A stretch of DNA of 64,000 nucleotides, taken from the NCBI GenBank assembly GCA_002269645.1, contig NIVC01000486.1:62001-126000 (forward strand), written 5' to 3'. The notes under the pieces are model-generated. The model saw only the letters and a list, made by a program, of their open reading frames with translations, had not been told where the DNA came from and searched no databases. Source of the stretch: Macrostomum lignano. Taxonomy: Eukaryota. Positions 23,996-56,589 of the stretch are shown here, piece after piece (the first letter of the stretch is position 1; each line of letters starts with the position of its first letter). The position numbers were made by a program, and so were the translations under genes.

Positions 23996-24040
23996 CTAGA
24001 CCCTGAAGATGGCCATTGTTGGTCCGAAACGCGTCGGTAG
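23996..24040 (+). ncRNA. Hammerhead ribozyme, inverted copy
   Basis: CTGAAGA at 24003, GAAAC at 24026, predicted cleavage after GUC at 24035. Confidence 0.75.
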
Positions 24041-25144
24041 AAAGAATTAATTGTAATCTATGTTGATTTTAACTCCTAAATTTAAATCAAGAATTGTAAA
24101 CGTCTGTCTATAAATCTGGAAGGTTGACAGACCTGGGTTGGTTGAACCCGAGGTTGATGTAAGACAGAACAATCTGAAATATTAATATGTTTTATCAAAA
24201 TTTTGTGTTACATTAATTGTTTGAGTTGAGTTATTTATTTCTACAGAACTAGCCGCAGGTATTAATACATCCCAACTTGTATTGTCATTACTTCCCTCAA
24301 ATCGCCATGATGCTGGGTGTTCGGTTGAAGGTGATGGTCTCCCACGCAAATCAATTTTATAACACATTATTGCGGAAGGGCATTGGACTTGAATCCAATA
24401 ATCGGTTTGAGTATTATTTGTTGCCCAATCTGTTGAATCGTCACCATCAAACGCTTTCCAGCTTGCAAAATCGGTTGTATTAAATTCGGTGCTTGCGGTT
24501 ATTGCAAAACCATTTCCACTCCAATCTGCCATGGTAGGTATGTGACCAGTTTCAACCGTTTGGAATCGATCTTGTTTTGGGGCTCCACCCCCAACTAAAT
24601 TATCAACCTCCGTTTTGGTATAAGAATCAGCAACATTCCGTTTTAAATTTAAGGAATTATCAACTTCGGTTTTGGTATAAGAATCGGCAACATTCCGTTT
24701 CAAATTTAAGGAATTATCAACTTCGGTTTTGGTATAAGAATCAGCAACATTCCGTTTTAAATTTAAGGAATTATCAACTTCGGTTTTGGTATAAGAATCA
24801 GTTATATCTCTTTTCAAATTTAATGAATCATCAATTTGAGTTCGAGAATAAGAATCAGCAATATCTCTTTTTAAATTTATTAAATTATCTATTTCAGTTT
24901 TGGTATATGAATCGGCCGTATTGCGTTTTAAATTGAATGAATTATCTATTTGAGTTTTGGTATAAGAATCTGCAACATTTCTTTTTAAATTTAGTTTAGT
25001 ATCAACTTCACTTTTTTTATAACCTTCATCTTCATTAATATATCGGTTATCTCCGAATGTGACGCTTATTCCACCAGACGTACCACCGCCAGTACTTGTT
25101 GTTCCGTTCCATGAGGGTGTTCCAGAAAATAACATTTTTACTGT

Positions 25145-26634: not shown

Positions 26635-27399
26635 CTAAGTCTCTTCTTCCTCATTATCTTCTTTTATCAGATCTCTTAAGATTCGATTTTTCCTTTCTAA
26701 CCTAGGGTTGATATATATATGTTTGTATTGGCTGTCATCCCAAATTTTTTTACACATACTTTTAAATGGTTTTATATCCAACCCGGGATTAAATCTAGCG
26801 TGTATATTTTGTAAATCATAATTATCTAAATCAAACATTACACAACAACTTGCATTGTTTTTTATAATCGATTCTAATTCTCTAAAGGACTGTGTTAGAT
26901 AAAAAGCTCCAATTCCATCTCCTCTACCACTAACAAAAATTTCCTTTTGTAATTCTTGATCGCCGTCGTTAATACAATCATCAAAAATAATTAGTGTTTT
27001 ATCATTTTTTGGAATTTGATGATAGGGTAACCGGGTCGATACTCTAACAGTTGGGGCTCGTTCGGTGATGTTTTCCGGTTGTTGTGCCATTGTTTTACAT
27101 AAATCCTCAATGTCATCGAGTGTAAATCGCGGTTCGTCATCATCCTCATATTGCTCATATGCTCTTAACATTCTAAACAAGACATCTTTTTTTAATTTGT
27201 TTTTTAATCCATGTTTAAGAAATTCATAATATTTTATTCTAGGTTTGTTAGTATAAATTATTAAATTATTATAGTCTATCATTCCATCGGTTGTTAACAG
27301 GTCATAAACAAAGTGTGTTTTTCCTTTACCCGACCCACCAATTACTAAACAAAGAAAAGGATCATTTGGAAATATCTTATTGTGTTTTGCTTTTACCAT
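26635..27399 (-). CDS. A32-like (FtsK-HerA) genome packaging ATPase
   Basis: Walker A GGSGKGKT, Walker B LIIFDD, GR....FYLTQSF motif. Confidence 0.93.
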   Translation of the reverse strand: MVKAKHNKIFPNDPFLCLVIGGSGKGKTHFVYDLLTTDGMIDYNNLIIYTNKPRIKYYEFLKHGLKNKLKKDVLFRMLRAYEQYEDDDEPRFTLDDIEDLCKTMAQQPENITERAPTVRVSTRLPYHQIPKNDKTLIIFDDCINDGDQELQKEIFVSGRGDGIGAFYLTQSFRELESIIKNNASCCVMFDLDNYDLQNIHARFNPGLDIKPFKSMCKKIWDDSQYKHIYINPRLERKNRILRDLIKEDNEEEET

Positions 27400-27484: not shown

Positions 27485-28957
27485 TTACAATGGCGCGTCC
27501 CGAACGATAGTGCCATCAGCTTTAGCAATTGATAAATATTCCTCTAGAAACAATACGTGGGCGTCGATTGCCTGATTACCGGTTTTATTAATCTCTAACA
27601 TATAATTAAGTCCAATATTGGCTACGTTTTCTTTCTGTGCCGTTAGATCATAAACAACCACTGGATGGATGTTTAGAAACTCTGTGGGAGTGTACTGAGG
27701 AACGGCAAACGCTTCATTTTTGGCATAATCTTGATAATATTTTATAAAATCATTAACATCATTATTTGCAATATTTAGATTAAGAGGATCTTTAACCGGA
27801 TAGTATTGGTCATCAACCTGCAGGCGGATATTCTGAACATTAAACTCGTTAATAGCCGCAACCGCATTATCTGTTGCAGTGGCCGCTTGTGCTGCTATGG
27901 CACCCGATTGAAGCCAATATAAATCCCCGTTTGCTCTTTTACTCCTTCTATTTGTTATCTTAAACCAAACAAAAATATATCTCACCCGACGTTTTGATGT
28001 CAGTATTTGCCACTGGAATGAATCCTGATTGTTATTAATGGTTCGCATAAAATGTCTACGATTCAAATAAAATATTTCTTGATCATGCGTTAACTGATTA
28101 TCGACATGTTTTAATAGTGGTGCTGTTACCTCGATAGTTGGCACGACTAATTGTATTGATGCTATACTAACTGCTATATCGGTTGAAATCGAGGTTCCAT
28201 AAAGTATCCTAGGCTGATACCCACCAGATATTTGCAACTGTACCCCAAATTTTAATCCTTTCCATACCCGATTTGGTGAGAAGAATCCAAATAGTGGAAA
28301 GATTGAAAAGTCCTGCTCATATGCCGTTGCCGTGGTTAAAACTGCAACTGGGAATTTATTCCGACGATCTATAAAACCGGTGTTAATATCTTTTGTATTA
28401 GTCATAGTGGTTACAACTGGAACTATATTGGTATTAAGGTAAGCAATTAGAGCTGCAGTATCTGCACCAGCTGCGTTTTGTACATTAGGGAAAACTACTG
28501 CTTGACCGTTACCTTTATCAGGCATCCACCCAACATTATCACCAACTTGTTTTGATAAATAAGTATAATTTAAATGTTTCAAAACTCCATTAATCTCTGC
28601 GGGGTTTGATGATGTCTCAACCTCGGCACCATTAACAGTTAGTTGAGCTTGGGAAAAACATTTATAAAACCAATCATTTTCTATTATTATTCCGGATCGA
28701 TCTGCGATATCTCCGGCTGCAAGAGCAGTTCCATCATTTCTAGTATACAACCATCTAACGCGGAAAAATGCATTTTTCATATCCAATATGGTGTTGGTTG
28801 CGCCGATGTCAAAAGCTACCGTTCTGCTAGTAAAGTTATTTGTATTATCACTTGTTGGTAGGGTATAATTTAAATCTCTTGCTCTGGCCTCATTAATATA
28901 CTGGCGGTGCTTTTTGAAATAAAATTTATCACTCCATATAGTTTTTGTTTCAGCCAT
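27485..28957 (-). CDS. Major capsid protein (double jelly roll), intact 490 aa
   Basis: Size, position next to the ATPase and penton, and motifs LDMKNAFFRV, FSQAQLTVNGAEVE, IRLQVDDQYYP, PVVVYDLT. Confidence 0.8.
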   Translation of the reverse strand: MAETKTIWSDKFYFKKHRQYINEARARDLNYTLPTSDNTNNFTSRTVAFDIGATNTILDMKNAFFRVRWLYTRNDGTALAAGDIADRSGIIIENDWFYKCFSQAQLTVNGAEVETSSNPAEINGVLKHLNYTYLSKQVGDNVGWMPDKGNGQAVVFPNVQNAAGADTAALIAYLNTNIVPVVTTMTNTKDINTGFIDRRNKFPVAVLTTATAYEQDFSIFPLFGFFSPNRVWKGLKFGVQLQISGGYQPRILYGTSISTDIAVSIASIQLVVPTIEVTAPLLKHVDNQLTHDQEIFYLNRRHFMRTINNNQDSFQWQILTSKRRVRYIFVWFKITNRRSKRANGDLYWLQSGAIAAQAATATDNAVAAINEFNVQNIRLQVDDQYYPVKDPLNLNIANNDVNDFIKYYQDYAKNEAFAVPQYTPTEFLNIHPVVVYDLTAQKENVANIGLNYMLEINKTGNQAIDAHVLFLEEYLSIAKADGTIVRDAPL

Positions 28958-32823: not shown

Positions 32824-33282
32824 AACATCTTTCAGAACCCGAGAAGGAGTAGTACTTCAAATACATGCACAGAAAAGCAGATTGAAATAATATTTAAGTG
32901 AAGTATGTGGTAGTAATTTTGAGATATTTATTTCACCAACGAAAAACACCAACAAATGTTGATTTATTGGCAAGCAACAACTGGCACAAAAATGGATTTT
33001 CATATTTATCATACAATACTCTCGAGAAGTTGCATGTGTGAAGGCTTCACAGGAGAATTAGGAATTCTAATGACTAACAAGCTTAGAGTACAGCAACTAA
33101 CTAGTCAATCGGGTTGATGACTATTGAGAGATTAGTTATATCCATACATTACAAAAAGAAGAAATGCACGTGTGTTAGTCTGCTGCTATCAACAAGCTGA
33201 GCAAAAACCTAACAAATTATTTTCGCCTTGCCCTACCAGTAGGTGACGTCATCACATTCGGTCACTTTGACAAATTACATCG

Positions 33283-35302
33283 TCAATTAAATAACATCTT
33301 AGACAAGCTGGCGGCAAAGTCGGCGCTCGGATCCATCGACGAACTCTCGTCTTCGAAACCCGTGACGTCATCCCATTCGACCACCCTGAAACGGTTGCCT
33401 CCCTCCTCGGCGAACTTGGTCAGAGCGTCGCGGAACTCGGCCAGATGAGCTCGCACATCGCCAGTCCTGATGCCGCCGACTCTGCATTCTGCCTGCTTCC
33501 GGATGCCGAGTACACAGGTGGGAATTTCGAACGCGATTCTCCTCGATCGCCAGTCGTGCACTCGGAACGAGTAGCGCCTGCCGCTGGCCGCTCGGAACTC
33601 GTGCACACTCGACTGAGCTCCGAGCTCCGCGAGCTGGCTCCGCAACTTGGACTCGTCCGGGTAGCGACCGCTCTTCGGGATCACGAACGTGTACGGCAGG
33701 TCGAACGGGATTGGCTCTGCAGAGCTGGACAGCTGCTGCATGTCTGAAATGAGCACAGATGCTCAGTTAGACCAGCAGCTATCACCTAGCTAATAGCAGA
33801 CGTCATATCCGTCTTAAATAAGTCGCTACTTACAATCACTGAGGGGCTGCGCGAATCCGATCCACGTGTTTGCCGCCATCGCGAACGCCATCGACATCAG
33901 GGGAAGCTCGTCTCTGACCGACTCTGCGCTTGACTGCTGAGCAGCTCTCGATACGAAACTCCACCCGTCTATTAATAGGAAATCCTCAACTGCAGCAAGC
34001 ATTTGCCACCTCAAAGAGTCACCGTCCTCCGCGATGTCGATCACCTGAAGCACGCTTGGCTCCGACTCTGCTACCTCCTCCGAGCTGGTGTCGCTAAGCT
34101 CTCTCAGAATCGAGTTCGCTCTCGGGTGGCTCTGGATGAAGCGCAACTCGTCTCTAAACTGCTGGAACATTGCCGTCTTGTCCTGATCGGCCATCCTGAG
34201 CTTCTGCATGACGAACATGGGTGCAGCGTAGCCGCAGAAGACCACTGCGTGCGAGTAGGTCGACTGGTCCTTCGTGAGCGGCTTCTCCAGCTGCAGCAGG
34301 TACGCCGTTACTCGCTTCTTGTAGCCGGGACTGTCGAACTCGAGACACAACTCAGTCGATGCGGTGCTCACCTTGCTGCATCCAGGAAACAGCATCTGTG
34401 GACACACACAGGATACCGGCTGGTTCTGGCTGCTCACGGCGCGCTCGTCCAGCAGCAGGAAGTACTTGGGAACGACTAGGATATTGCTGGGGTTGACATC
34501 GGTGAGTCCGAAGTTTGTGAGCACTTGTTCTCGGATGAGGCCTTGAGCATCGAGCAGTGACGAGAAAATCTGGCGTCGCATGTTGGGCAGCACGTAGCTG
34601 AGGAACCCGGCGGCCAGTTGCCATGCGAAGCTCTCGCCTGGGCTGCTAAACGAGTTGTCTGAAAAGGTGCGCATTGTGAAGGGTTTTTCGTTAGTTTGTA
34701 TTTACACATACTGTACAGAAGTAATGTATGGTTATGTTTTTAAACTTTGACCTACCATTGTGATTTGATCTCAGATTTTCTTCGAATTTTTCCATGGATA
34801 ACGCTTGAAGATCGTAGGACCAGAAGACATCGCTGCGGTTCTTTCGATGCGTTTCGGTATCGTTGTGATTGTCATTGTTTTTCACTAGATGGAGAACTTT
34901 CCTTCTTTTGTTGAGGCACTGGAAAATAAATAAAATTCCTAGTTAATCCATGTGGTTGTTTGATATTCTATGTCCATATAATGAAACAGAAATGTCAATT
35001 TGGCATACCAAATCTACGGCTAGTGACCATAGTAACCGTATTCGATGTGTTTTCATCTCAGGCTTTTGATTTTCTACTATCACAATTGCATCGGAGACTT
35101 CTATTTGCTTCTTAAGTTCCAAAGTGTCTTTCACATCAGAAACAACATCTACTTGGCCAAGTATACGCTTGAAGAGTCTTAGCAGACAGTCGCGTTCAAC
35201 AATTCCTTGCGCGAGGGCTCCGATGATAATTACCAAAATCATCGTCTGAAAGGTGAAGAAGCAAAAGTTGAAATCAGTACGAAAACTTTCAGTACTTTCC
35301 AA
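33283..35302 (-). CDS. Multi-exon TIR-like/STING-like gene (exons about 34943-35300, 33834-34658, 33283-33743)
   Basis: STING-like domain 1 (FAWQLAAGFLSYVLP...). Partial domain 2 LPYTFVIP...GRRYSFRV...AFEIPTC...GG...AEFRDAL...FRVVEW matches the STING C-terminal half. Canonical AG/GT sites. Confidence 0.7.
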
Positions 35303-37663
35303 GCCGTAGAAGATTAACTAATTTAGATTTTATTTATTCAGAGCAGCCAAATCAAAATTTTCTGCGTCGACTGGTATGAATAGCCGAGTTGCATTTTTTG
35401 CATGTCTCGTAATAAAGCAAATTATACTAATTATACGGATTCCGGATTAAGCGTATTCCATTTCACGTTCCATTCATAAGAGTTCGACTTCCTAACTCAT
35501 CCACACGTGGGTCATTCTGAGCAAATTTTAAGTGCTAAGCAAATTAGTTAGCTACCGATCTACCAGTGTAGGAAACCAGTGTGTATTTGCACTGATGAAA
35601 AGGCTTTTGGGATGGACGTTCGACATTTACCGATGTTTCTAGCTGCTGGCTTCAATTCTGTTCAGGTCAATGGACTTCAAGTAAGACTAGAGCCGAGACA
35701 AGAGTACTGTTTGAAGATAAATGCAAAGGCTTTTGGTTGGAAATTTGTGCTTATTGAAGCTAAGCCTATAAAGTGCGGCACTTTCTGCTCTAGACCAAAA
35801 CGGCATTTAATCCAACACTTTTTTCTAGAATTTTAAGTATTCTATTTACCTATCATTTCAAGCGATGAGTTGAAGTTGGAGCCAGTCGAAAAATAATTGT
35901 CCCTTAATAGTGTCAAATGGCACATGAAGAACAGACAGAAAGAAATGGAAACAAATTGTCGATATCGATATGTAACAAATCGCAAATCCACTTGTTCTGT
36001 TTGGCACAGTAATATGCTGATTAGCATAATATAGTGTCATAACTGTGCTAACTGCAGAAAGGACAGTTGCGGACAATTCTAAATGTGTCAATTAGCACGT
36101 TTTTGGCACAGTTGGCAGAGTTGCAGATTTTGCTAGGACAACTATTTTCCGCCGGGAGTGTATTAAACTTGTTTCATGCGCTCATATAGTGCTACTTAGA
36201 TAAGTAGTTTGTCACGATTCTCACCAAAGTAATGGCGCATATGTATTCAGGAGAATTGGTAAACGTGTCAGTCCTTAAACGATTTCTTTGGTAAAAAATA
36301 CGAGTCTCAGCTGGGCGCACAGTTAACGAGCCACAAGCTTAACAACTATGGTTGAGAATTCACTGAAACCTCAGTAAGAAAATTGTGAGATCTAGAAATT
36401 TTGGCAAGCTAATTCTACGTCTTATTTTACAGTCGCATCTGCAGCATTCACTGTATATATCCCCACAGTCCAACCACAAAATTTACTCAATTGAAAAGCT
36501 TTAATCTTTTCTCTTCAATGCACTTACCAGTAAACGATTTTAGGTTGATTCCCAAGACTTTCGAAATCTCTCGATTTAGGCTTTTCTCGTTGAATGCTGG
36601 TAATTTGAAATCGCAGCAAGTTGACGATAGAGGAGTAGGAAAACGAATCTCAGAAGCTTAGGGCTTCAAAGTATAAGGAAAGACAACAGAGAAATCCGCT
36701 GACAATCCACGGCATTTCCACGGGTGTTCAGGGGTGAAGCCGCGGCAAGAGTGCATTCAGTGCGAAGCATTACTTGTTTGCGACGCATCATGGCTATTTT
36801 TAGAAATCATGCGACTCAGGCCACTGGAATGGAATGCCCACGGAAAAACCGTCCTGTCTGAACATGGAACTAAATACAGCAAATTCATAACTTCAACATT
36901 CTACTTATATAAGCTTACAAGCGGAATTTTGTTTTCTTTTTGTTTTTAATAATCGTCGATTACTCAAACAAAGGCCTCAAAATTGTTTTATACTTGTAAA
37001 TAATTATTTAGACTCACTGTTACTACTTCAAACAGCGGATGCTGAACGATTTTAACCATAAATGAAATACTGATTAGGCAGGGCTTAGCCAGAGGGAGCA
37101 AAGGGTGGCGGCTAAAAAATTACGAGTATACACGTTATTGGCGCTCCGTTGTACTCAAATAAAACGGCATCCCCAAAAATAGCGCCACGATGCGCAAATA
37201 ACAAAATAAAAGCTAATTTTCAACTGTTTCATCTAAAAATATTCAACTATTATACCGAATTATCGATATATTTTATGAAAACATCAAAACTTTGCTATGG
37301 AAAAAAGAACCTACTATAAAATGACAACAAAGCGATTGAAATAGCCGAACAGGCCAATACATACTGACGAGCGAAATTGGCGAAAATAGAATTATAAACC
37401 GGGCCGATACAATATGTATTTTATTCACATCAGCAAACTATAGGCTAAGTTTTTGTCTTTATAAAGAGACATTTTACCAGTCTAATTATAATTCAATTTC
37501 TGAGCAGGTAATAAGAAACAAATTGTGATAAATATGAGGAAAATAAGAGTACAGACTAATGCATGCAAGCAAGTTTAAGAAACCTATACTGAAAAAACAA
37601 ACGGTGTTAATTTGTGTAGTAACCTAATCGTAGTTTGATTTAAAGAACTTTCTTGATTCGTCA

Positions 37664-38170
37664 TCAGCGAAGACCCTCTCGCGCGCGTCCGACGGCGCCA
37701 AGTGTCGACAGAAATTTTTCGTCAGGCCAGTCCAGAACCCGAAGAAGTTCAGCCAGCATGGTCTTGAATGCCATGATGTACTCGTAAAGGTTCTGCTTCA
37801 GTCTCGTCCGACACACGCCTCCGACGCCGCTCTTGGCTTGCCCGGGAAGGTTCAGCACGCACGGCGGCACATCAAAGGCCACTCTTAGCTCTCCGCGCGA
37901 GTTTGACTTTGATGTGCAAAAACAGAAACTGTAATAGCTGTTCTCGTTTTCTTCAAACTGACTCGAAGCTCACTTGGACTGGTACAAAAAAATGATCGAA
38001 CGTGAGCGTAACGATGTTGTTTTGACACCAGCACATTGTCCTGATAATTTGAAACGGATTCGCTGCCAAGAAACGACAATGAGGCCGACTCTGCTGGCGC
38101 TGGACTGCTTGCTGTCTGAAAGTCCGGTACGTAGATCGAACTTGAATTTTAGATTTCTGCGAGTTCTGGA
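37664..38170 (-). pseudogene. Further paralogous STING-like C-terminal exon, possibly degenerate
   Basis: SKSNSRGELRVAFDVPPCVLNLPGQAKSGVGGVCRTRLKQNL is close to the paralog at 41990-42489. Confidence 0.55.
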
Positions 38171-39469
38171 TAGATTTGGACTAGCCACTTGCCCACCCCC
38201 TCTGGGGGGTAAAAGGACACCCAAAAGATTAAGACTCAACCCCCCACTCTGAAAGTTTCTTTACCGTTGTAGAAAATTAATTCATCTTACAGTTATCATG
38301 CATCAAGACATGCAGCAATACCTTTGGAATTTCGTCGCAATGCCTTATCAATTTGTTGCAGATTATTAGACCATCGAAATTTAGATCAAAAGCAGACTGG
38401 TTCGCAGGTCAGCAACACGGACCTGCAGGCTTCCAGATGGCTCCATGCTTCAGCGTCAACCGCTTGAGAAATCCTGAACCATTGGTCAGCATGAATGTTT
38501 TATGATGCTATTTTACTTTTAAGAGAGGCAAAATTACAAAACCCGATCATTTACTTTCGTAGCGCTATGGGATTATAAACATTACAAAAGCTAAATTTGA
38601 ATTATTTATATTTTATCACCGTCTGCACCTTCAAACTGCAAGTTAAGCACTCCATAGTCGTTTGTCTGATAACTGACTCGCCAATTTTTCTGACTAGAAA
38701 CTGAAAGTCGGGCTTCAATAACTTTTTCTACTTGTAAATAAGCCTTGAACAAGAGACGTTCGATTTGCAACTGATCTATAGAAGTCCGAAATGAGAAGAG
38801 GTGATCTGTTTTATGCTAGAATCAGCAAACTTTTAGACGCTAACACATTCGCTTGATTTGTTAGCTCAAACTGATTTAACTTAACATGCAGCCCAGATGC
38901 ACATACCTGACTCGACATGCTTTACGACGAAGATGTTAAAGCGACAGGGCGATCAGACATTGCTTTTTTTGAAAGCGGGTATTGCAAAATAAGTTGCCGA
39001 ATAGGAAACTCGAAAGCAGAAATTCAAACCTGCATAGTTCAGTAAATTGCTCTCTATCGCAGCAAAATTTGTGGCAAAAGCGCAGAGAAATACGCTGAAT
39101 CTCCGCGGCAGTTCCACGGATGCGCCCTGGACTACCCCAGTCGAGTGGCGAAGTCACAAATGGAATTATTTTTAGCTATTACTTGTACATAAGTTGAGAA
39201 TTATTTGCAATTTGATAAAAGAAAACTAAACCCGAATCATAGGTTCCGCTTAATGGAATCAAATAAGTATGCCGCTAATAAACAAGAAATTTTGATCACT
39301 CTAGATTTCTAGAAATAACCGAAGATGCATTGTTATGTGAACTCTTAAAATGAATCATCAAATGATTTCTTCGACGCACTACAAGTATTTAATCAATAGA
39401 ATATTATAGAATTTTTTCTATCTAAGAGCATATATTTTTCTAATATGTCTTACGCAAGCCAGGAGCGAA

Positions 39470-39870
39470 GACTATGGAGAGTGTTGTCTAGGGCAGCGGA
39501 GACTATGGAGAGTGTTGTCTATGGCAGCGGAGACTATGGAGAGTGTTGTCTAGGGCAGCGGAGACTATGGAGAGTGTTGTCTATGGCAGCGGAGACTATG
39601 GAGAGTGTTGTCTATGGCAGCGGAGACTATGGAGAGTGTTGTCTAGGGCAGCGGAGACTATGGAGAGTGTTGTCTATGGCAGCGGAGACTATGGAGAGTG
39701 CTGTCTATGGCAGCGGAGACTATGGAGAGTCTGTCTATGGCAGCGGAGACTATGGAGAGTCTGTCTATGGCAGCGGAGACTATGGAGAGTCTGTCTATGG
39801 CAGCGGAGACTATGGAGAGTCTGTCTATGGCAGCGGAGACTATGGAGAGTGCTGTCTATGGCAGCGGAGA
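39470..39870. repeat. 30/31-bp minisatellite (GGCAGCGGAGACTATGGAGAGT...)
   Basis: Tandem units visible directly. Confidence 0.95.
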
Positions 39871-41099
39871 ATACTTACTGAGATTCCCCGCTAGCAAAAC
39901 ACTAGTGGGATAAATTCAGTTCTGTTGTGTTTATATCTCAAAATAAAAAATTGAAGTGATTTGGAAGAATTGTCTAACCACCAATGCAAAACAAATTTTT
40001 GGCAAAGCCTGTGACTAAAATATCTAATACAAAAACAAATTAGATGCCCCTTATAAACGATTTTTCATCACTTCATGGTCTTGGAACAAGTTTTCATTTA
40101 AAAAGTCTGTTCCAACTACTCAAACATTCTTGATGCGATCAAATTTCCCAGAGAAAAAAGTATTAAGCAAGAAGGACCCTTTATGGCAATATAGTTCGAA
40201 TGGTTAAAATAAAACATTTCAACGCTTTTGCATAGCAATTTGCTTTTGCATTTTCAAAGGTGCCTAGAATGGCTCGTAGACACTAATAGACCCCTGGCAA
40301 TGCAGTAAGCAACCAGACAAACTAAAGCTGGCTGTAAACTAAGAAAATAGCGCCGTTCCAAGGCTTGTGTCAGTTTTTATCAACTTTCATAAATTAATAA
40401 ATTGTGCAAGTAAGCAAACACATACTAGGGCCGGGGCATTTTAGTCACTATCGGCAGGCGTATGCATTGCACAAAACAGATGAGTGCTCGGTGCAGTGCA
40501 GCACAGCAACAAGCTACTCGTACCTGCGGTCGCATTTTGAGCCGGCAGCCTGCTTTTTCTACTCTTCGAAGCAGAAAGAGACAAACTGTAGCTGCACTAG
40601 GTAGCTAGATAAGAACCGCCTGGTTACTAAGCTAAAGTAAAAAAAAATTTCAAGATTGTCCAAATAATAGACTAATTTTTATGAATAAAAAATGAGTAGA
40701 TTACTGAATTTTATTAATTGGACTGAATCCAATTTAGAATCACGTCGTAATTATGATTTCTGGCATAGCACGCAGAACTTGATTTTAAACATCACATGCC
40801 TACGACTTATTAATGGCGCAGAGAATTATTAATGAATTACAGCATGTCTATCACCTCACAGAGGATTAGGCAGCAAGACATTGGTTATGCATGACAATAT
40901 CAAAACATAAAATGAAGTGTTAAAGTTAACGATGTCTGCTAGATGTTAGGTTCAAATCATGCCTGCTGAATGGACATTTTTCTAGATAAATAATTATTGT
41001 AAACCTTTTAAACGATTATTGGAATAACACAGTTAGAACAGGGGTCTGCAATTTTTTCTACCTCAAGGCCAGATAAAGAATCAAGCTCATGGCTGCGGA

Positions 41100-41310
41100 C
41101 CAGGTGAGAGAGGAAAGGAGAGGGAATAGAAATGAGAGATAAGAGGGGAGAGGAGGGGCGAGAGATGCGGGGAGAGAGGGAAGGGAAGAGAGGAGGGAGA
41201 GAGGAGAGGGGAGAAAGACGGAGAGAAGAGGTCAGAGAGAAGAGATGGAAGAGGAGAGAGGGGAGGGGAGAGAGGAGACAAGAGGAGAGGAAGAGAAGAG
41301 AGAGCTGAAA
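41100..41310. repeat. GA-rich low-complexity purine tract
   Basis: Degenerate (GA)n. Confidence 0.9.
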
Positions 41311-41989
41311 AGACACAAACCTTGAGCGGGCCGGATTGCTATTTGTGAAGTTTCAGAGGAACCGAGGGCCGGATAGAGAGGCTTCGCGGGTCGGAGTTTG
41401 CCGACCCCCGACTTAGAACGAAACAATGAAAGGTTTCGACTAAAAATTAACCAAGAAAAGCAGAAGCTTACGTTAACAAACTGAAGGAAAATACTGCTAG
41501 CAGATAATTTAAAAAATCTAACAATTAATTAAACTGACTAAAGAAAACCGCTTTACCATTTTTCCTACTAATTACTGACAAAAATGATCATCACGCATAT
41601 TGTATGTGGAAATTTAGTGGCAAGTATACATAAGGAAATTAGCGCTCATTTGGATGGTTAATGAATTTTTAATGAAACAAACTAAAAAAAATTTCGACTT
41701 CTGGCAAACTGAATACAAGACTGCAACAGACATGGTCGATAATTACAAGTTAGGTGAGGAATTAGAAAAAGGCACAGCACAAAATCACAGCTACTGTTTA
41801 ATCCAGAGTTAAAAGTAGCTTTGACATAATTAGCATCTAATACTATTGTAAATAATAATGAATCCGATCATGTATCGACGCGTGCAGGACTGTTCGTCAG
41901 ATGGGTCTCAAGGAAATGGTGAAAATCTTTTTGGCAGATAAGGAAACCCGCTCCTTAAACAGCAGTCGTACTTGGAGTGGGCTAGCATT

Positions 41990-44900
41990 TTACTCCAAGC
42001 GAAGATTTGCCACATCAGCATGCTCAGCTTCGACATCAGCGAATACGAAGTCCCGCAGGCTCTCTGTGTACTCGCGCGTCGGATGGCGCCAAGTTTCGGG
42101 AGGAAATTTGTCGTCAGGCCAGTCCAGCACTTGAACGTATTTCTGCCATTCCATGCACTCCAGCATGGTTTTGAATGCCATGATGTACTCGTCAAGGTTC
42201 TGCTTCAGTCTCGTCCGACGCACGCCTCCGAAGCCGCTCTTGGCTTGCTTGCGAAGGTTCAGCACGCACGGCGGCACCTCAAAGGCCACGCTTAGCTCTC
42301 GCGAGTTTGACTTCCAAGTGTACAAGCAGAACCGATAGTTTCTGCCCTCGCTTTGAAACGTGTCTTTCTTAAAAGTGACTCCCAGCTTACTGAGCTGCTC
42401 TTGCAGTTCGGAATACTCAGGATACCGCGCACTGCGTGGTACAACGTACTTGTAAGGCAGCTTGAACGGCAGTCTGCCGGCTTGTTCACCTGGGTAAAGA
42501 TTCAGGCGATTTTGTTAAAATAAATCATTTTCACGCACCCACTAGCGGTGTACATGATACTGTAGTACCGTAGCTGTAAATATGCAACTGCTGCCGACAA
42601 ACTAAGACTTACATACAACCAAATGATGAACAAATCCAAAACAAGAGTTTGCAGCCATTGAATAAGCCATGGACATCAGAGGAAGGTTTTCATCGACCTT
42701 GATAGTAGGATTTCTAAGATCTAAAATTTTCAATTGTAAACAGTAAAAATATGACCAAATAAAACTTTTGACTAAGATTCACTAATTCCTAGAGAAACTT
42801 AAACGTACTTAAAACGAACTTACTTAGACGTTGAACTAGTTCGTGGAATGAACAATTCTTTGATTCTCCCTCAGAGAAAGCAAACTGAATATTGTCTAAT
42901 CTGTCGTTTGCTAGACTCAGGATGGACACAACATTATTCTCAGGAAGAATTTGTAATGAAGACGGTAGGACGCTGTAGATGTCTCTATTGATATCCGGAG
43001 TGATGACAACGACAACCAGATTATACTCTTGACGCATGTGAATCTGAAATTTACCAATTACTTTGATATGATATAACGATGTAACATTACCAGTCAACGA
43101 AAAGAAAACTTACGTAAGTTACAGCTGATGTTATGTCCCGAAGCAGGTCATTGTGCTCACTATCTGTGTAGGCACAGCTGCTGTACTCACTGTTGAAATC
43201 CTCCAAGTCTTTAAGAGATGCAAACAGAACCATTCGCCGGCATTTGACGAGAACTTCGGCAAAGGTATTATTTAACAGCCGAAAATTTTCTACACGAAAG
43301 CCTTCCTTCTCGAGCCTATCAACGACAGCATCGTGAAGCTCTTCGACTGACTTTGAAAACTTGACAACTAAAACATCACTATCAACTTGATGATGATCAT
43401 CAATCGATCGGATAGGTTCATTGCGGCGATCATTTAAAATTTCCTCCTTGATGCGGGAGAGAAAGAGTTGACGCCAGTTATCGTCGGACTCCCCCTTCTT
43501 ACGCTCAACAATGCAAGCTGCTTTGTCGAAATTCGCAGAGTTGTCAGACTGGACGTCTACAGAACCGAATTTTGCAAGCAGCTCGTTTGCTTTGGGGTGG
43601 TTCAAAATGAACTGCAACTCTTCCTTGAAGAGCTTGTAGGCATTATGCAGCATTTCTTCTGAAACATCTAAATCTTTGATTCCTCGAAGCTCGCGAATGA
43701 CAGTGACTGGAGGAGCGAAGCCTCCTAAGATTATTGCGTGGCTGTAGCGCTCAGACTGAGAAATATTCAATTCCTCGACGAATTTGACAAGATAGAGAGG
43801 AATTGTTTTGGAATAACCTGGACTTTCAAACTCTAATGTTAAAAAAGTAGGTTGCGCACAATTTTGCGGTGCACACAATTCCTCATTGTCTGCAGGACCA
43901 GGATTCGAAGTCATTACTGGTTCACTCAGTGTGCGTTGAATCTTGCAACATGTAGCATTAGGACATTTAGCAAAAAGCTCCAACGGGTTTGGATTCACGT
44001 GACTGTCACTGTCGATGTCGTCCTCTTTCAGCAGCACAAAGTACTTCTTCAAAACAAATATTTTTTTTGGATCAATGCTGCTAAGACCACATTGATCGAG
44101 CAATTCTGCTCTTAAGAGGCTACTCTCATTAGTTACTTGGTCTTTCAAAACCGTGCCGATATTAGGCAAAATGTATGCCAAGAAACCTGTGGCATACTGC
44201 CAAGCAAGACCGTTTCCAAGGCTCCCAAATACCATACTTTTGCTTACTTCTACAGCTACCTCTTCAGTCAGCCACGCTTGGACAGATTCTTGAATTTTGC
44301 CAAAATTGCAGGGCCCAACTGCACGGACAAAGTTCTGAATGCGGTGGTTTTTAAGCACGGTGTCTCCGTCAGATCCATCAGAGGAAGCGTACATCTTGAC
44401 GATGTACATGACTGGCTCTCTCAGAGCAATCATCCTGTCAAAAGCCATCTGGTACAGATGACCGCGAGCGTGGCTCGAGATTTCTCCTGGCGGCTTGAAG
44501 TACACAACGATCACTTTGTCACACTCAGCCATGTTGTCAGAAATGGCATTCCATTCAAAGCAATTTGGATCTCGTTGGCGCAAACGAAATCCCGAGTGCA
44601 GAAGGAAGTTGATAAGCGAATCGAAACCATCCATCTGTTTGCTGCTGGCTGCTGAATCGCCAACAGGTAGCGCAAAGATAATGTCTGAAATAAAAACAAA
44701 AATTACTGAAATATTGCTGCTTACAATACAATATGGCATACAGTATCTGAGACTTAATTACATGTAAATCCTATCTACCTTTTTTTAGCCATATTTGCAA
44801 CTCGGCTTCCATGTTCTCAGCTGATATTCTTCTGACATCTTCGCGTTTTCTGACTTTTTCTAGCAGCTTTTCTGCCGCAAGATTTTCCGCTTCGACAATG

Positions 44901-45255
44901 AGGACACACTTGTTGCAGTCTTTGGCTCGCTGGAATGCGCAATAATAACACGGGATACTAGTGTGGGCCTGAATAATGTTGAGAGTACTCCCAGAAACAC
45001 TCGAGAATCAAAACCAATTACCTCGAGAAGACGCTCAACATTGCCGATAAATTTGTAAGACCATCCTTTCGACACAACCAGAATGAGTCGATCAGAGTTC
45101 TCGACATCATTAAGTGTTTGAGTCTCAACGACATGGCAGGATTCGGAATCAAGAACAGCCTGAATTCTCTGCCTGATGTCGCTTGGATCGCAGACGAGCA
45201 CAACCGACTGACTGCGGGTTGGCTGAAGGCTTGCTGCTGCCTCTTCTGCGTCAGC
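41990..45255 (-). CDS. Multi-exon gene: several TIR-like domains, a STING-like domain and a second partial STING-like domain
   Basis: Exons about 44779-45255 (small internal intron), 43114-44684, 42824-43043 and 41990-42489. GNGLAWQYATGFLAYILP, GYSKTIPLY, FAPPVTVI and AYKLFKEELQFIL match the STING CTD. TIR-like segments: ISDNMAECDKVIVVY, LEKEGFRV...KCRRMVLFAS. Confidence 0.75.
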
Positions 45256-45601: not shown

Positions 45602-48600
45602 CTACTCTTTTAACTTGTAGTCGAAGTCGGGCGAATCATTGTAGTCGTGCGGCAGCTCTGGCTTGAGCACGACGTGCCAATTGAGCAGCGGTGTGTCAGC
45701 TCGCTTAGGCAGAGTGTACACGGTCTTGTGCACCGGCTTGCGGTAGGCACCCAACTGCTCCATCTGCTCGCTGTACGGGGGCCAGATGCGCGCCTTTTCG
45801 TCGGGTGTTGGCACTCGCGGCTCCTGTTTAAAGGTGACAGTTAAAATCAATTGGAATCTTATTGACAATCTTTATAGTCTGGTAGTATGGTTGTCGCGAC
45901 TTTATTAGTCATTTCTTAGTTCATCTGCACTTGTATCTTGTTTACTGTTTTCTCTCTCCCTCTCTGTCTAGTTCAGTCTTGTTATTCTTATCTATCTCTC
46001 TCCCTAGCTGCCTTCTGATTGGCTCCTCAATCTCGCCTCTTGCCTTGCACACCAACACCACCCCTCTTTTTCTTATCTTCACTTTACCCCCTCTAGTTTA
46101 ATGACATTAATATACCCGGTTGAGCCCTGCGCCTAGGGATTCCAAAATCCCGACAATTTACAATCCCGGGATTGAGAAATCCTGAAATCCCGATGGTTTA
46201 AAATCCCGGGATCACTAATCCCGGAAAATCCCGACTGAGAGTAATCCCGGGATTGAAATCCCGTGTTTTGAGGCTAAATCCCGGGATCCCGGGATTGGAA
46301 TGCCTACCTGCGCCCCACTTGCTTGTGTTTGGTGTTAAACTCTAATTAACTTATCTTATTTACTTTACTTGACGCCGAACAAAAATACCCGAACTTAAAA
46401 ATAATGTAGACTTAATGTAGACTTAGAATTATAGCAGAAAAACAACTTGTAGCTTTCTGAAAAAATTACGTTGTACAAGCTAAATTATTAGTTGAACCTA
46501 TAAAAACTTTTTACTGTGAAAATTAACCAACAAAATTCAAAATTCGTGCTATTTTTGCTCTACTAAAATTCAAACTGGCAGTTGAGCAGCTGTTGCAGAT
46601 GGACTGGGAGGTGTTGCCCTCTTTTATTTTTATCCTTAACCAAACTTTTTTAAAGAAGTTCTCATGGGATTTTTTTCTTCAAAGCTGGCCCATGTTTACA
46701 AACCTGGCTTGGAGCGTCTTGTAATTCGTTGACACTTGACAGACTGTTGTTGCAGCTGGGAGTGACAAAGGGGATGTCAACTTAAGCACCAGAATGGAAC
46801 CCGAAGTTCAGGCCCTGGGTCCGGGATGAGATGTCTCGGCGATTCTAGTCGTCTGGGCCGACAAGTTATCGATTGCAGTCGGTTTGGTCCGGAGCTGAAC
46901 TTCGGGCTCCATTCCAGAGCCTTAAGTTGACACAAAATCCCCATTTTATCCCCTTTATCCCCTCGGACCCCAAGTCAGGGCCTGGGATGAGATGTCTCGG
47001 CGATTCTAGTCGTCTGGGCCGACAAGCTATCGATTGCAGTCGGTTTGGTCCGGAGCTGAACTTCGGGCTCAATTCTGGTGCTTAAGTTGACATCCCCTTT
47101 GTTGAGTAGAATGTTACATATGCATTGGTAAAGCGCAAGAGCTTTCCGGATGACATAATATTTTACTTTCTTAGTGCACCTTTGCCCTGTGATATATCTA
47201 AATATACATAGACTATTTTAAGGCCAACGTTGCTTTATCAAAAGCACCACGGATAGAGGGTTAGCCAGGCTTCTTTGAGACCCCAGCGGCCTATGACAAC
47301 AGCAGCCACAAGCCAAGTGTACGGAGGATACGACCCCTCTTGATTCGCTAGATCCGTCGCCGTCTACACACTTATAGTTAGACGGCGACTTACACTTATA
47401 GTTTCAAACAATATAAGTATACTCAGCAACAGTCAAAAGTTCCACCCACCAAGCGAGATGAAAATTTTCTCACATATTGCGACAAATTCTCACTCACAAT
47501 TCAACCCTCAAGTTACGCAACTAAGCCGCGGCGAGGAAAGGAAAGTTGACTGTATCAATAACTTGTAATAAATGTCAGTCGCACAAAATCAGAAAAATTT
47601 TTAATGCAATATTCAGTTAGAATCGCGATGCTAAATAACGCGTGTGGGATCCCCTCGCACGCAGAAGTGCGCGATCCTGCGGGGCATCCCCAGGATGAGG
47701 CGGCGCAGAAAGTCCTGGAGAAGCTGCTGCCAAGCGTTTTCAATGGCATGACGCAGCTCCGCAACATTCTGTGGTGGATTCTCTTTTCGAATGCTGCGTT
47801 TTAGGAAGTTCCAGACATGCTCGATGGGACCCATGTCTGGGGACCGGGAAGGCCAGCGCAGAGTGCGCAGCTGTAGCTGTTCTTTCAGTTGACTAACAGC
47901 ATCGGCTCGGTGTGGCGGCGCGTTGTCCTCCTGGACCATTAAGCAGACCCAAGCCACCCCCAAGTGGCAATAAGATATGTTCGTGCCGTAAGTTGCGTCA
48001 CTCGCAATAAGTGAAAAAATCATCTCACTTTTTTTATTAGAGGCAGGGGGTTGTGTGCACCCTGGCGCACTTTAAGCGACATAGGCACACAACCGGCGAG
48101 AGGCATTACTGCCCATTCCGCCGACTCCCCTGAGCAGGCATACAAGCGCGCGGATACGTACGCAGGCACACACTCACACAGGAGTGTACAGCGGCCCTAA
48201 CTTTATCAATTGTTAGGCATGTACACTTCACTGCGCCTTGGGGGTTGGCTCTCAAGGCCGTTAATTGCACGAGCAGAGCCAAGCCGAGATTCCAATTCAG
48301 CCCCAAATTAATGTGACTGCACTTGGAATCGAGCCTGGGTCGCTGGCACACCAGGGGCCCGTGCTATAGAATACTCTTAACTCCTAAATCCTTAAGAGTG
48401 TCCCAACTCCTAGCTCCTAGCTGGCTTTTCTGTGCTATAGAATCAAGAGTAAATGTTAAGAGCTAGGAGGCTCCTTAAGGACGTTAGGAGACTCCTGGGT
48501 GAATTTAGGAGAACTCATTAAGGTCCGTGGCATGCTATAGAATTAGGAGAGGAAGTCTAGGAGCTAGGAGTTGGCTTTTAGGAGTGATTCTAGGTGCGTG

Positions 48601-50094
48601 TGTCCTATAGAATGAGAAAATTTCGCTCCTAACTCTTGACTCCTAAGCCAGAGTTCAAGGGCCAATTTTCACTCTTAGACAAGCTAGGATTATAATGTTT
48701 TCGGACAGCGAATCGGATTCTGATGAGGAAGTGCAGCGACGGCTCTCACAAATGATATTTTTTTAGCTACCGCTGGGCTACGCCCCCCCTAATCATCTCA
48801 CTTAGTGGGGTGGAAATTTTGACTGTTGCTGAGTATATGAAATAGAAATATAATAATAATACTCCAACCGTCAATTGAGCACAGTCACCAACCTGAAAGC
48901 TATACGGATCCCACTTGGGTCGGAGCAGCATGAGCGGCGGCGCCAGTTCGCTAAACCGATCCGGATGCTGCCTGATGAGATGAGCCTCTATAGCCGGCGG
49001 GTATCGGCACACCGATTCGATCACTTGCACAGGCGCCGGCTCAAAGCTGCGCGATTTGAATTCCTCTTCGCGCTCTCTCGGCACCAGCACCCAGTCGGGC
49101 AGGTGAGTGCCAGGTATGAGGGTCGGCGTGCCCTCCGCTTCGTCAGGCGGCGACATCAGCCGGCCGCGGAACACCTCCGTGCCCCACACGCGACAGCGGC
49201 GCCGAGAAGCGTCGCCAAGCACCGGCTCGACTCGGGTTGGCACGCAGTAGCATGGCTCTTTGTACCTGGTTTGGTAATTGGATAGGATTTGATGGCTCTT
49301 TGTACCTGGTTTGGTAATTGGATAGGATTTGATGGCTCTTTGTACCTGGTTTGGTAATTGGATAGGATTTGATGGCTCTTTGTACCTGGTTTGGTAATTG
49401 GATAGGATTTGATGGCTCTTTGTACCTGATTTGGTAATTGACATGATTTGATGGCCCTTTGTACCTGAATTGGTAATTGGATAGGATTTGATGGCTCTTT
49501 GTACCTGGTTTGGTAATTGGATAGGATTTGATGGCTCTTTGTACCTGGATTGGTAATTGGATAGGATTTGATGGCCCTTTGTACCTGAATTGGTAATTGG
49601 ATAGGATTTGATGGCTCTTTGTACCTGGATTGGTAATTGGATAGGATTTGATGGCTCTTTGTACCTGGTTTGGTAATTGACATGATTTGATGGCCCTTTG
49701 TACCTGGTTTGGTAATTGGATAGGATTTGATGGCTCTTTGTACCTGGTTTGGTAATTGGATAGGATTTGATGGCTCTTTGTACCTGAATTGGTAATTGGA
49801 TAGGATTTGATGGCTCTTTGTACCTGGATTGGTAATTGACAAGATTTTATGGCTCAGGCCCTCCATGTTACTATACATGTAGTGACTGACAGGTTATCAT
49901 GGAGAGATGGATAAGAGAAGTGCCAGCCATTTTGAAATCGCAGTTTGATATAAACAAACTCACTTAGCGGCGTGATTCAGCCGATAGAAGCAGCGCCCAA
50001 CGCCCAGATCTTTCAGCTGGATGGCCAGCTCGGCAAAGAATTTGCCAGTAAGAATTGGCGGCGCCATGCGGCCATAGTATTTCACGCGGGGCAT
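45602..50094 (-). CDS. MRPS34: Mitochondrial ribosomal protein S34-like gene (exons 49964-50094, 48893-49265, probable 45602-45823)
   Basis: LKDLGVGR, KYKEPCY..TRV, RVWGTEVFRG, DWVLVPREREEEF and YPP match MRPS34 motifs; splice phases are compatible. The third exon is less certain. Confidence 0.75.
46134..46306. mobile_element. hAT-type MITE (173 bp)
   Basis: TIR TAGGGATTCCAA/TTGGAATGCCTA, 8-bp TSD CCTGCGCC (46126-33/46307-14), internal ATCCCG(GGAT) repeats. Confidence 0.85.
46765..47102. mobile_element. MITE-like element with about 46-bp imperfect TIRs and an internal duplication of about 105 bp
   Basis: ACAAAGGGGATGTCAACTTAAGCACCAGAAT inverted at both ends; no convincing TSD. Confidence 0.6.
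47660..47940 (-). pseudogene. Tc1/mariner transposase C-terminal fragment
   Basis: QEDNAPPH...WPSRSPDMGPIEHVW motif. Confidence 0.85.
49252..49845. repeat. 40-bp intronic minisatellite that includes the MRPS34 exon-2 acceptor
   Basis: Minus-strand unit ...TTACCAAACCAG/GTACAAAGAGCCAT..., about 15 copies. Confidence 0.95.
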
Positions 50095-51414
50095 TGCCGT
50101 TGCGCTGGAAGTGCGCGTAGTGTTTATAATATAGTATCATATAGTAACGAGCTTCGAAAAAAATAGTCAATAGAGGCCACTTACCATTGCGGGCAGTTTC
50201 AATTAAATCTACACTAGCCTACTGGTTCTCAGTTAGTTACAACAGCGCACAAGCGGCAGTTGTAAGTGGAAAGAAAAGCTTTTATTATAAAGTTAACTTA
50301 AGCCTCGTCTTTTATGAGACCAGCAATACGGTCTGGGGTTTTAAGCTAGCATTACAGAAAGTATAAAAGGCAAAACTGTCGGTTCACAACACAAGCAGAC
50401 AAGTGGCTTAAAACTGCAATAGTCTAGCATAGACTCTACATAAGGGCAGACATGGATAAATGTACACAGACGGATAGAATGTACAGCGAGATGAAAAGTC
50501 ACTAAAATTAGAACCGCAAGTTCTATTCCACTGAACTAAGCGCGCAGACAGACTATGGGGGGATAGGAAAACAGTCAAAGCCAGAGATTCGTAGTAAAAT
50601 AATTTTCTTCCGAACTAAAAAACTACTGAATCGTCAAACTACTCTACTTGTAGTAGGCGCCTATAAAATCTGTAGGTATAAATTAGGCAAAAAACGAAGG
50701 CAGTAGAGACTAATGCTTAAAAGTGTCGAGTAATAGTGACACAAATGAAGTAATTTCTATTTTTTCTGCAAAACCTCAAAAGCCTGCAGTATGTGAAACC
50801 GGAGTAAACAAAGCATTTATGCATAAAGACACTATAAAAAGCTTTGTATCAAATTATATCATATCAAATTTTATTATCAAAAACTGTACAGAACGCATTA
50901 ATAATAATACTGTGTGCAGAGTATGAGAGGCTTGATTGCCATCTGCCAGATTGTGCTACTACCAGTAGTTATTTTTTCAAATTTAGTATGCGCATCAGTA
51001 ATAATAAAAGAATCAAATTAATATCTAGGCAATGTAAAGTAAATCCGAGAACGATGCTCTGATTCTGAAAAAAAACACTTGGCAAGACAATTTTATTATC
51101 AATTTAAGCCAGTTGGGATCTAAAACATGTATAAATAAACAGCTCTAATCAGTGATTGCTTATTTATTAGGCACGACAGAAAATGATGCGAAGGACCATC
51201 ACCTGAGGTATTGCTGGCGCTATGCGAAAGGAACTGCAATCGCGATTGTAAAAAGCGAGATTTAATTTACAAGGAATCACCATATGTACTCTAATATTAG
51301 AGTACAAAAAACTTCAATTGAAAATTTGGCTGAAAAGTTTGGAATTAAATAATATTCACCAAGTGTTGCGAGACTGGAAGAAACCTGCTGTGGGTTCAAT
51401 GAAATGGAATGTTC

Positions 51415-51965
51415 AGTGGCGATTCTCAGGGAAGGTTCAGTGGCGATTCTCAGGGAAGGTTCAGTGGCGATTCTCAGGGAAGGTTCAGTGGCGATTCTCA
51501 GGGAAGGTTCAGCGGCGATTCTCAGGGAAGGTTCAGCGGCGATTCTCAGGGAAGGTTCAGTGGCGATTCTCAGGGAAGGTTCAGCGGTGATTCTCAGGGA
51601 AGGTTCAGCGGCGATTCTCAGGGAAGGTTCAGTGGCGATTCTCAGGGAAGGTTCAGTGGCGATTCTCACTGAAGGCTCAGTGTAGATTCTCACTGAAGGC
51701 TCAGTGGAGATTCTCAGGGAAGGTTCAGTGGCGATTCTCACTGAAGGCTCAGTGTAGATTCTCACTGAAGGCTCAGTGGAGATTCTCAGGGAAGGTTCAG
51801 TGGCGATTCTCACTGAAGGCTCAGTGTAGATTCTCACTGAAGGCTCAGTGGAGATTCTCAGGGAAGGTTCAGTGGCGATTCTCACTGAAGGTTCAGTGGC
51901 GATTCTCAGGGAAGGTTCAGTGGCGATTCTCAGGGAAGGTTCAGTGGCGATTCTCAGGGAAGGTT
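51415..51965. repeat. 24-bp minisatellite (TTCAGTGGCGATTCTCAGGGAAGG)
   Basis: Tandem units visible directly. Confidence 0.95.
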
Positions 51966-51973
51966 GTACACAC

Positions 51974-52367
51974 CATGCGGGAGGCCACACTGGAGAGAGA
52001 GAAGCGGCACCGAGAAAAGCGACTATTGTCACCGCCTGGCAGCCATGCCGCGAACACAGGCGGACTGGCACAGGCCCGCCAGGCCGCGGTTCCAGCCGGT
52101 GCCGCACGGCGACTCCTGGCTGCACATCCCGGAGCGCAGCGCAAGGTCGCGCGCCTCCAGCAGGACGGCGCAGACCCGGCCGGCGCCGACGTTTACGCTG
52201 GCGACGCCGCGACAGACCAGCTCCCAGTCAGTGCCGTCGGGGAAATCGCGGGGCTGAACGTTGCGACGCCGATAGAGGCAGCCGGATTCGTCAACTGCCC
52301 ACAGCTCGCGCCCGTCTGCTGACACCTGCGATTGAGGCGGGGGTTCAGGAACTCTATGTGGACAGAC

Positions 52368-52420
<53 letters not shown>

Positions 52421-52500
52421 GACAGACGGACAGACACTTAGGCAGGCAGACAGACAGACAGGCAGAAAGATAGACAGGACACAGACGGACAGACAGACAC

Positions 52501-52561
<61 letters not shown>

Positions 52562-52570
52562 GAGACAGAC

Positions 52571-52614
<44 letters not shown>

Positions 52615-56541: not shown

Positions 56542-56589
56542 CTGAGAGTCGACGGGGATTTTTGAGATTCTCGACAAGGACGCTTTAAG

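Follow-up and report, generated by a model that had tools for sequence, protein, structure and literature searches.

The flatworm Macrostomum lignano carries an expanded, tandemly arranged family of genes for soluble proteins with two STING-type domains in one chain, the second (STING2) well supported as a STING fold by structural modelling and the first (STING1) reasonably supported by weak but specific sequence similarity. We analysed 64,000 nt of its genome (the window; assembly GCA_002269645.1, contig NIVC01000486.1, positions 62,001-126,000, forward strand), the minus strand of which holds three paralogous genes of the family (A, B and L) and one gene fragment. An earlier sequence-only reading of this DNA had proposed four minus-strand paralogs, and family loci do lie near the positions it gave, three of them as genes and one as a fragment. 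We read the family as a lineage-specific, tandemly duplicated and very divergent flatworm counterpart of the lophotrochozoan TIR-STING proteins.

Gene models and domain order of the family

The window DNA is eukaryotic, and its 550-amino-acid (aa) open reading frame (ORF) at 43087-44739 on the minus strand matches the NCBI protein P0001 (BOX15_Mlig031753g3, 927 aa) at 100% identity and P0002, which is encoded on another contig, at 90%. Here P0001 to P0005 denote database proteins, L001 the contig past the left side of the window, and L002 a second locus on another contig. The family members in the window are as follows.

45255-41990, minus strand: gene A, encoding P0001 (927 aa), placed by tblastn mapping and splice-site reading; six exons, 45255-45022, 44929-44779, 44684-43114, 43043-42824, 42720-42613 and 42489-41990, with stop codon TAA at 41992-41990
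37951-37665, minus strand: STING2 relic fragment, ~95 codons in an open frame, copying the C-terminal half of STING2
35242-33283, minus strand: gene B, 560 aa; exons 35242-35009, 34918-34756, 34658-33834 and 33743-33283, stop codon TGA
~5196 to below 1, minus strand: gene L, encoding P0004 (582 aa), cut by the left window edge, with its gene record in L001; exons 5042-4794, 1157-969 and 722 to below 1, found by tblastn at 100%, 95% and 100% identity

The spliced translation of the six exons of gene A equals P0001 exactly, with introns that are all GT..AG and 70-123 nt long. The ORF of gene B is likewise intact, its introns are GT-AG and 90-97 nt long, and its product is 89% identical to P0004 aa 153-559, while at the DNA level window positions 1-727 (gene L) are 97% identical to 33941-34664 (gene B). 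The paralog that had been placed at 5574-1 proved to be gene L, with the ORF at 5302-5574 falling outside the recorded gene model. At 38170-37664, where a further paralog had been proposed, there is indeed a STING2-like copy, but only as the fragment 37951-37665, which shows 67% identity to P0001 aa 807-890 in tblastn and 84% DNA identity to 42073-42313 of gene A, and for which tblastn found no upstream exons.

The expansion that had been proposed was borne out, with tandem copies both in the window and further left, where L001 adds two copies; some array copies are 99.5% identical. L002 repeats the same order of a Tectonin-like gene, MRP-S34 (mitochondrial ribosomal protein S34), gene A' and gene B'. 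A family-profile search for further members added P0005 only (UniRef A0A1I8G5R6), a mis-merged model in which MRP-S34 is fused to a gene A-like protein, and the genomic locus of P0003 was not located. The pairwise ratio of nonsynonymous to synonymous substitution rates (dN/dS) was 0.17-0.29 when four short copies were compared with one another and 0.28-0.36 when the two loci were compared; for gene B it was 0.18-0.29 against paralogs and 0.28 against the homeologous copy in L002, and for the two STING domains it was 0.30 and 0.41. Intact ORFs were found in at least six copies. Given dN/dS values of 0.17-0.36 and no internal stop in any copy, the gene family is real, expanded and under purifying selection.

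Domain blocks were drawn from an alignment of P0001 to P0004, which gave the following order for gene A.

44779-45216, minus strand: N1 (~aa 14-128), alternating strand/helix pattern
44243-44684, minus strand: N2 (~aa 129-275), putative alpha/beta domain immediately before STING1
43429-44232, minus strand: STING1 (~aa 280-547), candidate divergent STING ligand-binding domain
42830-43377, minus strand: MID (~aa 565-722), modelled as one domain, spanning the intron 43113-43044
42020-42691, minus strand: STING2 (~aa 735-918), exons 5-6, predicted as a complete, compact STING-fold domain

P0003 has the order N, STING1, MID, STING2, and an X-STING-X-STING order, X being an alpha/beta domain, is found in gene A, P0002 and P0003. 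In P0004 and gene B the order is N, STING1, STING2, with MID absent and a linker of ~20-40 residues between the STINGs. A single 1571-nt exon of gene A contains N2, STING1 and half of MID (the first), all covered by the 550-aa ORF 43087-44739, and a single exon of gene B contains STING1 and helix 1 of STING2, where the 282-aa ORF 33826-34674 covers both; because these junctions sit inside single exons, the co-linearity of the domains is independent of splicing. Neither STING1 and STING2 (no detectable similarity in hhalign) nor N2 and MID (not significant) could be related to each other, and a simple duplication of an X-STING unit is therefore not demonstrated by sequence.

The proteins had been proposed to be soluble, which the hydropathy analysis upheld: no transmembrane segment was found in P0001 to P0004, in which the maximum Kyte-Doolittle 19-residue mean was 1.15-1.49 and the peaks coincided with helix 1 of STING2 or with a region predicted to be beta. 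The N-terminal four-helix transmembrane domain of canonical animal transmembrane STING (TM-STING) was likewise not seen by hydropathy in P0001 to P0004, the 5′ end of P0001 being incomplete.

The STING-type and alpha/beta domains

In the AlphaFold2 (AF2) model of the whole protein, STING2 reached a predicted local distance difference test score (pLDDT) of ~60-82 over roughly residues 750-918, with a helix-strand order matching that of STING. A Foldseek search of this model against the PDB gave 167 matches at E <= 1e-3, and the 50 matches listed were all STING ligand-binding domains (LBDs); their lowest E was 1.6e-6, their probability 1.00 and their target TM-score 0.5-0.69, and they came from human, pig, rat, bovine, sea anemone, coral, oyster TIR-STING and bacterial TIR-STING. 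The Foldseek table gives no query ranges, and we assign the matches to STING2 because it alone was modelled with a sheet and usable confidence; over STING1 no sheet was predicted and the pLDDT stayed below 40. The modelling thus gives good support to a STING fold for STING2, with a long helix 1, a lid-bearing beta-sheet and C-terminal helices, and the predicted domain is complete rather than partial, as the sequence-only reading had taken it to be. Profile and hhalign searches gave no significant sequence match for STING2; the hhalign alignment with STING (E = 0.061), which is non-significant but colinear, places F755, R811, Y/F813 and E832 opposite the human cyclic-dinucleotide contact residues Y167, R238, Y240 and E260, respectively, and a proline opposite another such residue, T263. 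Of these, F755, R811 and E832 do not vary within the family.

STING1 was recognised through its sequence. Pfam PF15009 (STING_LBD), with a curated gathering score of 27 bits, matched P0001 at 18.5 bits (E = 0.0014) and P0002 at 18.7 bits, over helix 1 only (residues 285-314). A profile of four STING1 sequences gave 69 matches at E <= 10 against all PDB sequences, and the 60 listed were all STING chains, the best at E = 0.014, at human residues 155-193. When STING1 was compared by hhalign with the LBD of human STING (a query checked to be 100% identical to a PDB chain), E was 2.6e-4 and the probability 42%, with 140 colinear columns that take in helix 1, the segments of the lid and of 'EYATP', and the next helix; against a 14-sequence vertebrate STING profile E was 2.8e-3. 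At the human sites, STING1 has F for Y167, keeps Y240, and has G for E260, S for R232 and P or A for T263, and the R238 position is R only in the short paralogs and T in P0001. STING1 of gene A also has a ~30-residue insertion relative to the short paralogs. This weak but specific and colinear similarity reasonably supports STING1 as a STING-type domain, and with the fold of STING2 it sustains the earlier proposal of two STING-like domains per protein.

Between the STINGs, where two TIR-like domains had been proposed, one domain of ~165 aa was modelled. Modelled alone, MID reached a pLDDT of 65 and a predicted TM-score (pTM) of 0.66, with the topology bA-aA-bB-aB-bC-aC-bD-aD-bE-aE. Its best Foldseek match was chain 9ot1_E of an IL-17R/ACT1 assembly (E = 2.2e-3, probability 0.99), which we take to be a SEFIR domain, followed by a bacterial TIR-STING chain (E = 4.1e-3, probability 1.00) and, at E = 0.01-0.03, the TIRs of TcpB, TLR6, TLR15 and SARM1; TIR or SEFIR domains made up 15 of the top 50 matches. 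A D-L-E after strand C is conserved in MID (invariant D76, L77 and E78 of the MID alignment), and its glutamate might or might not correspond to the catalytic one of NAD-cleaving TIRs. On this model MID would be one flavodoxin-like domain, STIR-like (SEFIR/TIR) at best.

The N-terminal domains of P0003, P0004 and gene B can be aligned with N2, which had an AF2 pLDDT below 45. N1, with a pLDDT of 24-47, was modelled as alternating helices and a few short strands, and gave no Pfam or PDB sequence match. No TIR chain was found at E <= 10 when the N2 and MID family profiles were compared with the PDB, and a joint alignment of all putative alpha/beta domains was too poor to serve as a profile. A match of N2 to a sulfotransferase P-loop (heparan sulfate 2-O-sulfotransferase, E = 0.011, 47 residues) was judged to be due to chance. 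The earlier label 'TIR-like' finds weak support in the prediction that MID is flavodoxin-like, with SEFIR and TIR as its best, non-significant matches, but there is no TIR profile match and the fold is unsupported for N1 and N2, and a TIR identity of the alpha/beta domains is not established. The Pfam and AlphaFold/Foldseek searches that the sequence-only reading had suggested returned the STING fold for STING2, with Pfam below threshold for STING1 and TIR without a significant match.

Surroundings of the array

P0001 is annotated as 5′-partial, and its first codon directly follows a ...cttccag acceptor (45256/45255), ~350 nt past the stop codon of MRP-S34. In M. lignano, the last three letters of the spliced leader are ATG (PMC8629364). 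Given this acceptor and the ATG-ending leader, a start codon donated by the spliced leader in frame with 45255, with no further coding exon upstream, is plausible for gene A. MRP-S34 itself (exons 45603-45860 and 48767-49444, minus strand) is the immediate upstream neighbour of gene A and shares its strand, a pairing kept at L002, and the two genes possibly form an operon with spliced-leader trans-splicing. Further along, ORFs with tectonin-like segments lie at ~52000-56600 (minus strand), a position that matches the Hyd_WA/Tectonin gene of the syntenic L002.

Between gene L and gene B, the spacer contains a 24.8-kb block of low GC content (8002-32823; 28-38% GC), which has perfect terminal inverted repeats of 326 bp at its two edges (8002-8327 and 32823-32498) and is flanked by a 6-bp target-site duplication, AACATC (7996-8001 and 32824-32829). 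The syntenic array spacer at L001 18787-21174 has no such element. The block looks like a recently inserted element of the Polinton/Maverick type, with ORFs that include the following.

9805-12891 and 13959-14843: B-family DNA polymerase ORFs, with DANNLYG and YADTDS motifs
24182-25135: fibre-like ORF with an F5/8 type C domain
26635-27399: Pox_A32-like packaging ATPase
27485-28957: capsid-sized ORF, 490 aa
30660-31940: rve-type integrase

The polymerase frame of the element is split into its two ORFs by ~1.07 kb at 38% GC (12892-13958; flanks ~28%), in which no clear inverted repeats or duplication marking an insertion were seen; this stretch may be an intron of the polymerase gene or may disrupt it. 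The element also holds a 3.4-kb satellite (17080-20465) of ~150 copies of the 23-nt unit TAAAAAATCATAGAAGCGTCATG with 89% matches, and a perfect 348-bp inverted repeat (23080-23427 and 23727-24074) around ~300 bp, between 307-aa and 317-aa fibre-like ORFs, a segment that could be invertible or recombinogenic.

Minisatellites with periods of 18-54 nt occur at 1642-2230, 39464-39870, 49252-49855, 51406-51965, 53533-55029, 55451-55956, 56588-56963, 58419-58887 and 63119-63387. Several of them lie in introns or apparent coding ORFs; gene L has that at 1642-2230 inside its 3.6-kb intron, and that at 58419-58887 encodes SSDEDAAAQ repeats in a 560-aa ORF. At 47631-48023 (minus strand), a 130-aa ORF that on reading its letters resembles the C-terminal part of a Tc1/mariner-type transposase (…PPHRA…RSPDMGPIEHVWNFLK…) is probably a transposon remnant.

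Relation to known STING proteins and interpretation

TIR-STING fusions are known in oyster (PMC10732462), and TIR-bearing STINGs have been noted across Lophotrochozoa (10.1101/2022.12.18.520954). Like these proteins, compared here through their published descriptions, the flatworm proteins are soluble, multi-copy and found in a spiralian/lophotrochozoan host, and they carry an alpha/beta domain directly N-terminal to STING, the TIR identity of which is unproven in the flatworm; the oyster structure 6wt7 was among the Foldseek matches (E = 4.5e-6). By contrast, exhaustive phmmer searching detected no sequence relationship to the mollusc and annelid TIR-STING proteins, and standard TIR and STING profiles recognise the oyster domains but not the flatworm ones. 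Gene A also carries the extra N-terminal domain N1, and the flatworm short forms, unlike the oyster proteins, fuse STING to STING with no intervening domain. The sequence-only reading had taken the architecture to be undescribed, which fails for the domain content because published annotations give some oyster STINGs two domains of each kind, STING and TIR; these state the content and not the order, and the alternating order is our reading. What is new is the occurrence in a flatworm, the extreme divergence and the short forms with STING joined directly to STING; the content of two STING and two TIR domains is already known from the oyster annotations.

Canonical animal TM-STING, as exemplified by human STING, shares with the flatworm proteins the ligand-binding fold predicted for STING2, the helix-1 signature G-L/F-A-W-x-x-x-x-G-F/Y-L-x-x-x-L-P in STING1, and colinear equivalents of the lid and the 'EYATP' segment. 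It differs in that the flatworm proteins lack transmembrane helices and carry two STING domains per chain, with sequence matches confined to the ligand-binding domain and below the Pfam gathering score. The TIR-STING proteins of the bacterial cyclic-oligonucleotide-based antiphage signalling system (CBASS), represented by the TIR-STING/c-di-GMP filament (PDB 9LMQ/9LMR), are similarly soluble and place an alpha/beta domain before STING, and 9lmq and 9lmr chains were among the Foldseek matches of both the whole protein and MID. They offer a plausible mechanistic template, in which a ligand-driven filament activates the N-terminal domain. In contrast to them, the flatworm genes are spliced and encode tandem STING domains, no CD-NTase-like ORF was noticed in the window, and PADLOC and the relevant NCBIfam models matched nothing at E <= 1. 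Given these null results, the lack of any phmmer match outside Macrostomum and the GT-AG introns, we rejected a bacterial or horizontal origin of the family. Two word-indexed searches of 5.8 billion proteins likewise returned Macrostomum lignano proteins only, and the human STING query retrieved vertebrate STINGs only.

On balance, we lean towards a soluble receptor family descended from the spiralian TIR-STING proteins, in which a nucleotide would be bound at the STING-STING interface and the alpha/beta domains would signal. The proteins would then most likely serve in the cytosol as receptors, with a cyclic dinucleotide or some related nucleotide as the signal. Each STING of the long form (gene A) would be preceded by a flavodoxin-like domain, perhaps of TIR/SEFIR (STIR) type, giving (X-STING) x 2 plus an N-terminal extra, and in the short forms (gene B and P0004) the second X domain would be missing and the STINGs joined directly. 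Ligand binding at the STING-STING interface may lead to oligomerisation of the attached alpha/beta domains, which could then act as signalling scaffolds or as NAD-consuming enzymes.

A number of results weigh against this reading. No profile match reached the curated threshold, the sub-threshold STING_LBD matches were limited to P0001 and P0002, and nothing was found for this family at E <= 10 in P0003, P0004 or the isolated STING2 segments. The AF2 models were built on alignments of only three or four sequences; in the whole-protein model the STING1 region, at a pLDDT of 19-37, lacks the expected sheet, the assignment of the Foldseek matches to STING2 is indirect, and STING1 and STING2 do not resemble each other in sequence. 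A phmmer search with P0001 against 1.84 billion representative proteins (E <= 0.001) recovered only P0001, P0003 and P0004. No cGLR or CD-NTase gene was noticed among the window ORFs, and immune cGLRs were reported to be absent from most platyhelminths (Li et al. 2023; PMC9980059). For the alpha/beta domains, no TIR, TIR_2 or SEFIR-type Pfam family matched any exon or protein at E <= 1, and MID gave no Foldseek match at E <= 1e-3, with TM-scores of 0.3-0.55 and with CheY-like receivers, KaiC and others at E-values similar to those of the TIR and SEFIR matches.

The last of these results bear most directly on what the non-STING domains are. They may be generic flavodoxin-like modules, receiver-like or P-loop-like, that are neither NADases nor TIR adaptors, with output by another route such as oligomerisation only or partner recruitment, a reading that overlaps with that of a receptor family and that we regard as a credible possibility, if short of probable. 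It would account for the missing TIR and SEFIR profile matches, the PDB profile searches without TIR, the mixed Foldseek list of MID and the lack of a detectable relationship between the N2 and MID families; however, the highest-probability matches of MID are to SEFIR (0.99) and to a TIR-bearing bacterial TIR-STING chain (1.00), TIR and SEFIR contribute 15 of its top 50, and the placement directly upstream of STING mirrors that in known TIR-STING proteins. A deeper departure would be that the STING fold was kept while nucleotide sensing was lost, leaving a lineage-specific scaffold or adaptor with a degenerate pocket. Such a loss would fit the extreme divergence without supra-threshold profile matches, the glycine at E260 and serine at R232 in STING1 and the threonine at R238 in P0001, as well as the reported absence from flatworms of cGAS, NF-kB and IRF3 (PMC4117786) and, mostly, of immune cGLRs (PMC9980059). 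We nevertheless consider it unlikely, as the STING2 invariants align with R238, Y240 and E260, with an aromatic residue at Y167, albeit in a non-significant alignment, both STING domains are under purifying selection, and the sensing of exogenous nucleotides has been proposed for eukaryotic STINGs that lack a cognate CD-NTase (PMC10732462).

An annotation or assembly artefact, whether two single-STING genes merged or a mis-assembled repeat, would remove the double-STING architecture altogether. P0005 is a clear case of mis-merging, and the region is rich in repeats, with near-identical copies. Yet the domain junctions lie within single exons and continuous ORFs (550 aa at 43087-44739 and 282 aa at 33826-34674), for which reason merged gene models were rejected as the origin of the architecture, and the architecture recurs in at least six copies and at the syntenic locus on another contig, making an artefact very improbable.

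Returning to the receptor reading, STING1 and STING2 of one chain might even form an asymmetric pseudo-dimer with a single ligand pocket, in which the STING2 half-site would keep the equivalents of R238, Y240 and E260 and the STING1 half would have diverged, E260 being replaced by G and R238 variable; alternatively, each STING domain may pair with a partner in another chain. We hold the single-chain arrangement to be distinctly unlikely; if true, it would be a monomeric STING receptor for an asymmetric or non-canonical nucleotide signal, in a lineage thought to be without a cGAS-STING axis. Whether a single chain can build a STING pocket from two unlike domains is a question for which the short STING-STING proteins offer a compact natural test, and since M. 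lignano is transgenic and RNAi-tractable, the function of the family is testable in vivo. Flatworms, like nematodes, have been reported to have lost STING (PMC4117786), whereas this family indicates that at least Macrostomum, an early-branching flatworm, keeps STING-fold proteins that are too divergent for standard profiles, so that fold-level searches may revise the presence/absence maps on which accounts of cGAS-STING evolution are drawn.

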